From the sequence record NC_048054.1: DNA of 64,000 bases, one strand, 5' to 3'. Position numbers and translations under genes: made by a program. The notes under the pieces were generated by a model, which did not search any database, was not told the DNA's origin, and worked only from the letters and a program-made list of their open reading frames with translations. Of this stretch, positions 15,881 through 20,294 are shown one piece after another; position 1 is the first letter of the stretch; each line of letters begins with the position of its first letter.

Positions 15881-16086
15881 ATAGAAAGATGATTGCCTGG
15901 GCAGCTTTGGTGATCTTCTGCGTGGTGGGCGTGGTAGCTTCCACTGTCGCACTCAATCACTACAACTTCCTGTTGAGCACGTTGCTCACAATCGTATTTG
16001 GCGTTGGCCTCGTTATCTGCGTGAAGTGCTTAGACGCGGCCACATGGGATTACTGCGTTAAGAAAGGAAAAGAAAAGAATGGCTAA
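15877..16086 (+). CDS. small two-TM membrane protein
   Basis: Two hydrophobic stretches and a basic C-terminus. Confidence 0.7.
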   Translation: MNRKMIAWAALVIFCVVGVVASTVALNHYNFLLSTLLTIVFGVGLVICVKCLDAATWDYCVKKGKEKNG

Positions 16087-16612
16087 ATCACTTGGCGTTT
16101 ACCTGACGTATATCTTGCGTCATAAGCCACAAGATATCGGCATCGCAATGGACACTCAGGGTTGGGTGTCTGTGCATGAGCTGCTTGAGAAAGCGCGTTA
16201 TGTAAAACCAGTCACTCTGGAAACACTGACCGCCGAAGTGGAGTCAGACAACAAAGGTCGATTCGAGTTCAACAAAAACAAAACGCGCATACGTTGTGTT
16301 CAGGGTCACTCGGTTGAGCATGTGCTTTTGAACATGCAGGAGTGGACAGACTGGTCGCCGTTGTATCATGGTACGGCAGAAAAGAACATCTCGTCTATTC
16401 AGCATGACGGCATTCTAAAACGCAAACGCAAGCACGTCCATCTGAGCAACGATCTCGAAACTGCTCGACGTGTTGGTCAACGTCATGGCGTACCTGTTGT
16501 GTTCCAGATTGATACACTGTCCATGATTACTCACGGCTATAAGTTTTACCGTGCGGAGAACGGAGTCATCCTGACCGAGTACGTTCCTTCCCGCTACATC
16601 CGACTGGTGTAG
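16079..16612 (+). CDS. kptA: RNA 2'-phosphotransferase (Tpt1/KptA family)
   Basis: YILRH, GWVSV, DNKGRF, IRCVQGHS, LYHGT, RKHVHLS, VVFQID and FYRAENGVILT: all hallmark Tpt1 motifs are present. Confidence 0.95.
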   Translation: MAKSLGVYLTYILRHKPQDIGIAMDTQGWVSVHELLEKARYVKPVTLETLTAEVESDNKGRFEFNKNKTRIRCVQGHSVEHVLLNMQEWTDWSPLYHGTAEKNISSIQHDGILKRKRKHVHLSNDLETARRVGQRHGVPVVFQIDTLSMITHGYKFYRAENGVILTEYVPSRYIRLV

Positions 16613-17028: not shown

Positions 17029-17077
17029 TATAATAGAGATGAACGCTAGACACTCGTTTAGCTACTTACATGAGGAT

Positions 17078-18571
17078 ATGTATATGAAAAAGATTAAACA
17101 CGCTTTCCGTCTGACTGACCTGGTTAATATCGAAAAAGTCGATACCGTTGATTATTCCCAATTACACCACGGTAAACGTGCTATCATTGTTGGTCGTGAG
17201 TCTGACTGCCAGATGTATGACCTGCATATCGAAGGTGTTGGCGTCCACCACATGCAGTACCCAGAAGAATGTCTGTCGCTTATTAAGCGCAATCAGGGTG
17301 AGATGCTCGACAAGTGGGAAGCTGGTAAGTACGGCAAGAAGAAAAAGGTTGAACGCAAGATTCCTGACGTGCTGCGTAACTTCACTGCTATCCTGCCTGT
17401 GACCTGCAACGCCGATTGTTCATTCTGTCCTGAGAAAGAGATGGAGAACAAAGCGTCGCAGAAAGAGTGGCTGGACAAACTGATCGCTGCGATTAAGACT
17501 CACGGTCATCGCGTTGATCACGTATCTATCTCTGGTGGCGAACCTACACTGCGTATGAAGTACCTGTTCGAAACGATCGACCAGATTCAGACCAAAGCAC
17601 ATATGTATAAAGTTGGTCTGACGTCGAATGGTCAGTTCCTTGAGAAACCTAATCAGTTGCTGACATTCCTTGACCTGAACACCAACGAGATGTTGGAAAG
17701 CAAACTGTCGCATCTGAATATCAGTATGCACTCGTTCGACCGTGAGAAAGCAAACAAGATCATGGGCGTTAATTATACGTGGACTCTCGAAGACTTAGCC
17801 CGCTTCCGTCGTCAGTTAGGCCGCAAGCTGAGTTTCCACATCAACTTCGTTATCAACGAACAAAACATTGATAACATCGAGTGGGAGTTCCGTCAAGCCA
17901 ACGAGTTCATGAAAGAGAACCAGTGGATTGACGTTGTGTTCCGTGTTGACTACAACAACAAGAAGCTGAACAAAGAACTGCGTAAGTACGGTCTGGCGGT
18001 ACAGGCTGCGCGTGAAGCAAAACGACCACGCGATAAGAGCATCAAGTACACGCCTCCGAAAGTTAAAGAGCCTGCGCTGATCAGGCTGTTTAACTCGATC
18101 TTCGACGGTAGCTTCTACGATGACTTGACCGAAGAGACTATGCCTGGCATTGGTGATACGTTCACAACTGCATGTCCGTCCTGCTTCACTCACCGAAGCA
18201 CTGACTTGGGTAATAGCTTCGCCTACCTGAAAGCGTCTTCATACGAACCGAACGAAGACGAAGAAGAATACACCGAGATGGTGTTCCACATGGACGGCGG
18301 CCTGTACTTCGACTGGTCACGCAAAGAGCCTGTACCTGAAATGAAGGCGAAGACTAAAAAGTCGAAGCGCTTCGACTTCGAACAAAAGGCAGAGCATGAT
18401 GAACCTAATGGTGCTGCGCTTAAACTTGAACACGGTAAGAAAGCCAAACCTGTTCGCGTTAAGAAAGTCAAGAAGACTGAACCACAAGGCTACCCAGATA
18501 GCTGCAACTATCCTTCTCCGTGCAGTTACTCGCGTGGTTCGTCTTGCAGTTTCGGCAGCGGCATGTGCTAA
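17078..18571 (+). CDS. radical SAM enzyme with N-terminal extension and Cys/Ser-rich C-terminal tail
   Basis: CNADCSFC (CxxxCxxC), ISGGEPT, LTSNG, LNISMHS. Start 17078 or 17084 (GAGGA RBS). Confidence 0.9.
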   Translation: MYMKKIKHAFRLTDLVNIEKVDTVDYSQLHHGKRAIIVGRESDCQMYDLHIEGVGVHHMQYPEECLSLIKRNQGEMLDKWEAGKYGKKKKVERKIPDVLRNFTAILPVTCNADCSFCPEKEMENKASQKEWLDKLIAAIKTHGHRVDHVSISGGEPTLRMKYLFETIDQIQTKAHMYKVGLTSNGQFLEKPNQLLTFLDLNTNEMLESKLSHLNISMHSFDREKANKIMGVNYTWTLEDLARFRRQLGRKLSFHINFVINEQNIDNIEWEFRQANEFMKENQWIDVVFRVDYNNKKLNKELRKYGLAVQAAREAKRPRDKSIKYTPPKVKEPALIRLFNSIFDGSFYDDLTEETMPGIGDTFTTACPSCFTHRSTDLGNSFAYLKASSYEPNEDEEEYTEMVFHMDGGLYFDWSRKEPVPEMKAKTKKSKRFDFEQKAEHDEPNGAALKLEHGKKAKPVRVKKVKKTEPQGYPDSCNYPSPCSYSRGSSCSFGSGMC

Positions 18572-19561: not shown

Positions 19562-20040
19562 TGCCACGCATGTTCACTGAGACTCACCGCAATAAGCATT
19601 TCCGTGATCGCAACCATCCTGAGTATCACGGTGATGTGTGCGAGCGCATTCATCTTGAAGGTATGGAAACGCTGAAAGATCTGAAATACTATCAGGCTGC
19701 AATTGCGTTGAAGCGCCGTAGCTCCCCGCATCGTGTGCGTCGTACTGTTGAATCCCAAACATGGGATCAACTGTGTCAGTCCAGAGGAGAACGACACGAT
19801 ATCTCCTATCTGCGCTCTATGGTCAAAGCAACGGCCGCGCGTATGAAGGCAATTCGTGTCGCATACACCGAAGAGCATTCAAAGCGGCACAATCAACCAC
19901 TGCGTTTTGAAGTGAAAGACGCAGATGGTAATCGCGTTGATTTGTTCGTGACATACGATGCTGCCAACCACTGTAAACTACGCTCAGGGCTTGGTGCCAC
20001 ACTCAATCGCTACGAGGAAAAAGAAATAAAATGGCTGTAG
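19561..20040 (+). CDS. hypothetical basic protein
   Basis: TAATG overlap with GGAG RBS favours 19561 over 19546. Confidence 0.75.
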   Translation: MPRMFTETHRNKHFRDRNHPEYHGDVCERIHLEGMETLKDLKYYQAAIALKRRSSPHRVRRTVESQTWDQLCQSRGERHDISYLRSMVKATAARMKAIRVAYTEEHSKRHNQPLRFEVKDADGNRVDLFVTYDAANHCKLRSGLGATLNRYEEKEIKWL

Positions 20041-20294
20041 GTTTTGTCAAAGACGATGGTGTGAACGATACCATCGAAACAAACGTGCTGAACGAGATTG
20101 ACCGCGCTCGTTCAGAACTTCAAGGCGTAGGCTCCGACTACTGCATCAACCCTGATTGTGGTGAAAAGATTCCTGTGATGCGCAAACTCGCCATGCCGAA
20201 TGCGCGTTACTGCATTAACTGTCAAGCAGCGCACGACGGCACTGCTAACGTCGGCTACAATCGCCGTGGTTCAAAAGATTCCCAGCTGAGGTAA
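20031..20294 (+). CDS. ybiI: DksA/TraR-family C4 zinc-finger protein, YbiI-like
   Basis: CINPDCGEKIP..RK.AMPNARYCINCQ; the C-terminus GYNRRGSKDSQLR matches E. coli YbiI as I remember it, and the N-terminal GFVKDDGVND parallels GWANDDAVNE. Confidence 0.85.
   Translation: MAVGFVKDDGVNDTIETNVLNEIDRARSELQGVGSDYCINPDCGEKIPVMRKLAMPNARYCINCQAAHDGTANVGYNRRGSKDSQLR

Follow-up and report, generated by a model that had tools for sequence, protein, structure and literature searches.

The question raised by this locus is what a phage radical S-adenosylmethionine (SAM) enzyme does with a short, Cys-rich tail at its C-terminus. We analysed a 64,000-nucleotide stretch of sequence record NC_048054.1 (the window, to which positions refer unless a locus is named). 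The window is 100% identical to GenBank record MH460463, where the gene concerned, AD1_267, carries the label 'putative radical SAM superfamily protein', and the genome is that of the Dickeya jumbo phage vB_DsoM_AD1 (Alexandravirus; 261,658 bp). An earlier reading of the nucleotide sequence (the original prediction) had described here a radical SAM enzyme with an extra CPSC motif, a Lys-rich flexible linker and a final 24 residues with four Cys. All of these were recovered, in the following arrangement:

17072..17076, + strand: Shine-Dalgarno sequence GAGGA, read from the sequence, 7 nt upstream of the start codon at 17084
17084..18571, + strand: AD1_267, radical SAM protein, 495 residues plus stop codon (MH460463 annotation)
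17084..17359, + strand: N-terminal accessory beta domain, residues 1-92, from the AlphaFold2 (AF2) model
17366..18073, + strand: radical SAM partial TIM-barrel core, residues ~95-330 (Pfam PF04055, invariant columns and fold matches)
17405-17428, + strand: CX3CX2C motif (CNADCSFC; C108, C112 and C115)
18074..18322, + strand: family-specific C-terminal subdomain, residues 331-413, a beta-hairpin with CPSC
18173-18184, + strand: C364-P-S-C367, invariant, followed by E388, P389, E398, H402, G405, D410 and W411
18323..18496, + strand: disordered basic linker, residues 414-471, varying in length and sequence between homologues
18497..18568, + strand: Cys-pair tail, residues 472-495, with CNY, CSY, CSF and a terminal Cys, up to the stop codon

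The tail reads DSCNYPSPCSYSRGSSCSFGSGMC and is followed directly by the stop codon. Four of the 11 Cys residues of AD1_267 sit in these last 24 residues (hypergeometric p = 0.001), and at least three Cys-x-aromatic motifs in the last 24 residues were obtained in 4 of 200,000 shuffles of the protein. A six-frame scan of AD1 found no other real open reading frame (ORF) with a Cys-x-aromatic tail. The linker that precedes the tail contains 17 Lys or Arg in 58 residues. In an AF2 model built with a 63-sequence alignment, the predicted local distance difference test score (pLDDT) averaged 82 overall and fell below 50 over residues 435-495, predicting disorder from there to the end of the chain.

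Conservation of the tail, which the original prediction had proposed as a check, was evident both in aligned homologues and in the wider family. A word-based protein search yielded 67 homologues, down to 27% identity, 63 of which were aligned (27-96% identity). The wider family was collected by a profile search of 1.84 billion representatives, one per cluster at 50% identity, which gave 130 representatives at E<1e-30 and 537 at E<1e-10. All eight homologues from cultured phages (Alexandravirus, Sasquatchvirus Y3 and Yersinia phage fHe-Yen9-02) have retained Cys-x-[YF] motifs behind a basic linker. Among the 63 aligned homologues C364 and C367 of the core are invariant and two Cys columns of the tail are at least 90% conserved, and across the family the tail Cys columns are about 90% conserved. 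The 63 tails contain 144 Cys-x-[YFW] motifs, most tails having two or four Cys, and the last residues of the protein are such a motif in 37 tails and a Cys in another 15. The motif occurs in two to five copies, with spacing that is fixed within the motif and variable between copies. Its middle residue is most frequently Gly (53 of 144 motifs, none of the three in AD1), then Ser, Asn and Arg, and many relatives terminate in ...RCGY. At least two Cys were present in the last 30 residues of 117 of 138 further wider-family matches inspected, mostly as Cys-Gly pairs such as GCGSGGCG and SCGRSSGGC. The linkers, by comparison, show insertions and deletions of up to ~100 residues among relatives, and some are acidic. 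Judged by this conservation, the tail is not a chance feature. The homologue of Erwinia phage Alexandra (L007:2501-4096) has an enlarged tail, in which a further Cys pair (CSF...CSY) and a long spacer rich in Pro and Lys come before the terminal CGY...CGY, and the Cys-pair module is evidently duplicated within it.

Some family members, of about 270 residues, end just past the ...H-x-D-G-x-L-x-x-D-W block and have no tail. The genomic context of such members was readable at seven loci, a small sample. At four of the seven a called, small, basic gene ending in Cys pairs lay no more than two genes downstream:

L012:7011-7316: split Cys-tail gene, ending ...SGCTRSTRCG
L015:3991-4230: split Cys-tail gene, ending ...GGCRSGGC...GRCGGGGGRC
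L016:1418-1645: split Cys-tail gene for a peptide of 75 residues, ending ...GCGRTRSCG...SCGGTTRGC
L018:2770-3018: split Cys-tail gene, ending ...SGCGRNNSSGCGGGC

At locus L048 a Cys-Gly-Tyr cluster is found instead at the N-terminus of the directly upstream gene (L048:21-674, 217 residues). The sole tail-like ORF at L049 was uncalled and was counted as doubtful, since spurious frames often end in Cys, and no Cys-tail gene was found within 4.2 kb at L019. A split tail can also sit on a separate coiled-coil protein. As a control, 9 of 141 called genes at 10 loci had at least two Cys in their last 15 residues, these being three tailed radical SAM genes, the four split small genes and two unrelated CxxC knuckles. 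The background is about 1.5% per gene, at which four occurrences in seven loci are very unlikely by chance. Since tail-less members adjoin small Cys-pair genes, the tail is best described as a detachable module. Taken together, these results make it highly probable that the core functions as a single unit with the basic Cys-pair module, and that selection maintains the two together, either fused or in adjacent genes. The original prediction had left two readings for the tail, a self-modifying fusion of enzyme and substrate or an auxiliary Fe-S or metal site. The split tail genes favour a partner in the reaction that can exist apart from the enzyme, rather than a ligand fixed in its structure, and do not prove that the tail is a substrate.

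The enzyme itself clearly belongs to the radical SAM superfamily. PF04055 matched residues 121-280 with 51.5 bits (gathering cut-off 29.5; E 1.7e-13), and the protein carries both CNADCSFC and the SAM-binding motif SGGEP. The CX3CX2C and SGGEP columns are invariant in 155 family sequences. In the same set C364 and C367 are present in 155 of 155, and E388, P389, E398, D410 and W411 are 95-99% conserved. The AF2 model places CPSC at the turn of a beta-hairpin in a confidently predicted C-terminal subdomain, for which we found no Pfam family and no PDB sequence match; for this subdomain and the split peptides alike, nothing significant was returned by Pfam, PHROGs, PDB sequence or PADLOC searches. 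At the other end of the protein, where the original prediction had described an SH3-like extension of ~90 residues, the AF2 model has five beta strands and a helix at residues 1-80 (pLDDT about 74-94). This N-terminal domain has no Pfam match and is confined to the Alexandravirus/Sasquatchvirus-type sub-clade; most homologues begin ~15 residues before CX3CX2C.

We then asked which known enzymes the family resembles. The best NCBIfam matches all lay far below their cut-offs (HxsC 57.8 against 267.9 bits, MoaA 48-53 against 231-325, viperin 50 against 180, NrdG2 39.5 against 131), and the protein does not cluster with any characterised family. As far as sequence can tell, neither a tail that lacks conservation nor close clustering with a characterised family counts against the original prediction. 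Models for PapB and GggB gave ~20 bits against cut-offs of 340-650, and PHROGs returned 'radical SAM domain-containing protein' only. HxsC of the His-Xaa-Ser system, which would also call for HxsA/B/D partner genes, was rejected by its score; AD1_267 is the single radical SAM gene of its genome. These sequence comparisons indicate that the AD1_267 family is a coherent, essentially phage-borne radical SAM family outside every curated family. A Foldseek search with the core returned viperins first, and viperins were also the top PDB-sequence match. An exhaustive VIA-align search with a relative of 342 residues ranked MoaA (Z 18.5) and viperin (Z 17.6) highest, followed by GDGT-MAS, SuiB, SkfB, ChlB, anSME and CteB. 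On these model-based matches, the core falls in the MoaA/viperin/SPASM-twitch branch of the superfamily.

MoaA is the best structural match, with 260 residues aligned in a span that runs through the C-terminal subdomain. MoaA enzymes have a CX2CX13C auxiliary-cluster motif in their C-terminal part and a functionally important, flexible C-terminal tail ending in Gly-Gly. AD1_267, in contrast, has C364 and C367 only, with no Cys 13 residues further on, and ends in ...GSGMC rather than Gly-Gly. The alignment suggests that CPxC may stand in place of the auxiliary-cluster motif of MoaA. With neither CX2CX13C nor Gly-Gly present and the score so far below cut-off, AD1_267 was not accepted as a MoaA. 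By the same cut-offs and motifs, the label 'GTP 3',8-cyclase MoaA' on the orthologue Y3_274 of Erwinia phage Y3 (L008:2501-3844) is an over-annotation.

Viperins and their prokaryotic relatives (pVips) gave the top core matches and a weak PADLOC pVip match of 48.6 bits. However, the C-terminal subdomain of AD1_267 is unlike theirs, and the gene lies in a phage and not in a defence island. Membership was rejected at 50 against 180 and 22 against 450 bits (NF038283 and TIGR04278). R287 and K383 are the only basic residues conserved in the family, and those conserved in the C-terminal subdomain are acidic (E388, E398 and D410), a combination that fits poorly with triphosphate binding. Viperin-like nucleotide chemistry would thus be compatible with the predicted fold and would poorly match the conserved residues.

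The SPASM/twitch maturases (CteB, PapB, SkfB, SuiB, anSME and the pair CrpC/CrpA) are likewise radical SAM enzymes, and they act on Cys-rich peptides or proteins encoded alongside them; their folds matched at Z 15-17. At the level of architecture, a Cys-rich candidate precursor peptide is encoded with the AD1_267-type enzyme too, fused to it in most members and separate at four of the seven tail-less loci. Unlike the maturases, the AD1_267 family has CPxC only and is phage-borne, and its substrate-like segment is usually fused. No 7-Cys SPASM or twitch motif and no PF13186 match was found in AD1_267, C364 and C367 being the sole conserved extra Cys of the core. Nor did we recognise in it an RRE, the leader-peptide-binding domain of enzymes that act on RiPPs (ribosomally made, post-translationally modified peptides). 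The analogy with ranthipeptide and sactipeptide maturases drawn in the original prediction thus holds in architecture and fails in domain content. CrpC/CrpA provides a precedent for radical SAM thioether formation on Cys-rich proteins (PMC13692751).

A likeness in architecture is also found in the borosins, in which the enzyme bears its own core peptide at its C-terminus (OphMA) and of which natural split versions exist (SonM/SonA). Both fused and split forms of enzyme and core peptide are known (PMC8429565; bioRxiv 10.1101/2021.12.24.474128). The likeness goes no further than architecture, as the borosin enzymes belong to the SN2 N-methyltransferases rather than to the radical SAM enzymes and show no sequence relation to AD1_267.

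In the reading that we favour, at a probability of about 40%, the enzyme acts on the Cys-pair tail as its own peptide substrate, either in cis or in trans. Several features argue for a substrate. The module is portable, occurring as a C-terminal tail, as a separate small protein or as an N-terminal tag; it has been retained despite divergence of the linker; and its motif is repeated with fixed internal spacing, as in a repeated recognition site. Its conserved aromatic residue would be superfluous for metal ligation. The acidic residues of the conserved subdomain (E388, E398 and D410) suit a basic peptide better than a triphosphate, and the core groups by fold with enzymes that either act on peptides or use a C-terminal auxiliary cluster, in the part of the superfamily to which most known peptide-modifying enzymes belong. 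In AD1 the tail would be delivered in cis, possibly between subunits, and in tail-less relatives in trans from the small neighbouring gene. We envisage that the tail threads into the barrel and that its thiolates interact with CPxC, where an auxiliary Fe-S cluster or a metal with incomplete ligation is probably bound; in CteB, an open site on the auxiliary cluster is occupied by a Cys of the substrate. Modification of the Cys-x-aromatic motif by the 5'-deoxyadenosyl radical would follow. It could, for example, produce a thioether between the sulfur of the Cys and a carbon of the aromatic residue two places further along; other Cys-centred chemistry would be equally possible.

A number of points weigh against the substrate reading. 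Known thioether-forming radical SAM enzymes possess an RRE together with a SPASM or twitch domain; in AD1_267 neither is recognisable. Cys numbers tend to be even, and such pairing is explained no less well by metal ligation or a dithiol than by independent sites of modification. AF2 left the tail unplaced in both models, with pLDDT below 50 in AD1 and 26-39 in the 342-residue relative, whose short linker had made it a candidate for docking of the tail; the disorder in this second model does not itself argue against docking. No protease or exporter is associated with the gene, there is no obvious use of a modified peptide to the phage, and the basic segment could equally be a nucleic-acid-binding element. 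An extension of the substrate reading, somewhat less probable than that reading itself, would give the borosins their first counterpart among radical SAM enzymes. The members of this large phage-borne family would modify themselves or a partner, and during infection they would install a new Cys-centred modification (for example a crosslink from Cys to an aromatic residue) on a basic, portable tag of Cys pairs, with a half-built CPxC site completed by the thiolates of the substrate.

The pairing of the tail Cys also fits a role as ligands, and this is the strongest of the alternatives, though an unlikely one. The tail Cys pair would complete a four-Cys auxiliary Fe-S or metal site with CPxC, or would carry and deliver a cluster, and the true substrate would be another molecule (a nucleotide, a nucleic acid or a host molecule). 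Two invariant core Cys and at least two tail Cys add up to four ligands. In the predicted structures CPxC lies on a beta-hairpin resembling a rubredoxin or zinc-ribbon knuckle, and the alignment with MoaA, which has its auxiliary cluster in the C-terminal part, takes in the C-terminal subdomain. However, the Cys module occurs beyond disordered, variable stretches of 40 to 170 residues, on a coiled-coil protein of its own and N-terminally in a neighbour of 217 residues, all positions in which a structural ligand would rarely be expected. Tail Cys acting as ligands would also leave the conserved aromatic residue two positions after each Cys unexplained, and the AF2 models do not bring the tail to CPxC.

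Pairs of Cys could instead act as a redox shuttle, and this we regard as a rather remote prospect. Here the tail would re-reduce a core disulfide or a radical intermediate at CPxC after each turnover, like the C-terminal Cys pair of class I/II ribonucleotide reductases, in which a flexible C-terminal arm serves a core Cys pair. A Cys pair on a flexible arm together with a core CxxC reproduces this anatomy, the pairs are conserved, and viperin, which requires a reducing equivalent for its reaction, is among the nearest folds. Against this, one pair would suffice for a shuttle, yet 4 to 10 Cys are common, and the aromatic residue and the basic segment would have no explanation. We know of no precedent for a dedicated disordered peptide acting as a reductant in trans. 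The reductases are, moreover, unrelated in fold and chemistry, and AD1_267-type tails differ from their arms in being repeated, in bearing aromatic residues and in being able to sit on separate proteins.

The basic segment that always adjoins the Cys module leads to a further alternative, RNA or DNA modification, which we consider improbable. The linker would bind nucleic acid, and the tail Cys would take part in covalent catalysis (as a methyl carrier and resolving Cys, similar to RlmN/Cfr) or would carry sulfur. Cfr is among the fold matches (Z 11.3), and Tpt1/KptA in the AD1 clade, as well as Thg1, Metallophos and DSPc at locus L018, are neighbours of the gene. However, the Tpt1 linkage reflects backbone synteny of related jumbo phages and is absent from every more distant locus, some linkers are acidic, RlmN and Cfr rank well below MoaA, viperin and the SPASM enzymes, and no domain that binds nucleic acid was detected. 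A glycyl-radical activase, for which the tail would be a spare part in the form of an NrdD-like 'RxCGY' radical loop, is suggested by the many ...RCGY termini and by weak matches to NrdG and PflA models. It is very improbable in general, as a glycyl radical requires a buried site and not a disordered tail, and an activase of the NrdG/PflA type was rejected for AD1, which has no Gly at the motif position, no NrdD detected in its genome and an NrdG2 score far below cut-off.

With regard to distribution, the cultured members come from one group of Erwinia, Dickeya and Yersinia jumbo phages only, and the others from phage-like metagenomic contigs. The AD1-type clade was confined to phages in the data searched. 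When a wider-family member was used as the query against GenBank phages, the only matches were the same Erwinia phages and one lemur-gut virus. Two peptide patterns of the AD1 clade, run against the genomes of 185,579 prokaryote species, found no member of the clade; these patterns are clade-specific and could miss the wider family. The matches in that scan were generic radical SAM cores, at no more than 46% identity over short stretches, and the ESM Atlas likewise returned generic radical SAM clusters only. In the literature we found no paper on the family and no characterised member.

One detail of the original prediction requires correction. It began the protein at 17078 (MYMKK...), which is an in-frame upstream ATG. 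GenBank, all homologues and the GAGGA sequence point to 17084 (MKKIKH) as the likely start. Four close relatives (2910A, SNUABM_33, SNUABM_1 and phB78) carry, between a small hypothetical gene and the radical SAM gene, an extra ORF of 106-111 residues with the motif CCPYCGE:

L002:3046-3369: CCPYCGE ORF of a close relative
L003:3046-3369: CCPYCGE ORF of a close relative
L004:2154-2474: CCPYCGE ORF of a close relative
L005:2139-2474: CCPYCGE ORF of a close relative

AD1 lacks ~357 bp at window positions 17029-17083, where the relatives carry this ORF, and as a result two in-frame upstream ATGs (17039 and 17078) remain that lengthen the apparent ORF.

AD1_267 gave the sole Radical_SAM match in the 261.7-kb AD1 genome, and no second gene of this type was found there. 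Two genes upstream of it lies a Tpt1/KptA RNA 2'-phosphotransferase (16079-16612, + strand; Pfam 153 bits, E 9e-45), and downstream a DksA/TraR C4 zinc-finger protein (20031-20294, + strand; Pfam 36.8 bits), whose position is kept throughout the jumbo-phage clade, also at loci without Tpt1. Beyond closely related jumbo phages we found no conserved partner gene, as Tpt1, DksA and the other neighbours were absent from every distant locus. Neighbours shared by related jumbo phages only do not establish a functional link from gene context, and the unit of enzyme and tail therefore appears to be self-contained.

On the metagenomic phage contig with locus L018 (L018:580-3728), the tail-less member and its Cys-tail peptide have a Metallophos phosphoesterase and a dual-specificity phosphatase (DSPc) to one side of them, with a Thg1-like 3'-5' polymerase at the opposite side. 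This setting may be RNA-repair-like and reminiscent of Tpt1 in AD1, or it may be a coincidence. On a second contig (JGI 3300072015), a tail-less member with a gene for 74 residues directly downstream lies inside a T4-like phage head-morphogenesis module, between the prohead protease and scaffold genes. Behind the split Cys-tail peptide of L016, three tandem paralogous small proteins (L016:1660-2468; 78, 79 and 107 residues) have similar N-termini of the form ...I(K/Q)(S/T)KE(Q/E)(I/L)DN.PD...

Phage radical SAM enzymes are mostly unassigned, and a coherent family can now be set apart among them, with at least 130 representative clusters (50% identity) drawn almost wholly from phages and uncultured viral contigs. 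Its signature, a CPxC hairpin together with a detachable Cys-pair module, is testable, and the gene is tractable for anaerobic biochemistry, either as a single protein or as a two-gene pair. Whichever role the tail has, the 'GTP 3',8-cyclase/MoaA' label in phage Y3 should be dropped. If the tail serves as a ligand or a shuttle, the family would represent a new way to complete or recycle an auxiliary site. If the tail is the substrate, it would represent a new radical SAM design for peptide modification, without SPASM or RRE and with enzyme and substrate fused, and probably a new post-translational modification in infected cells.

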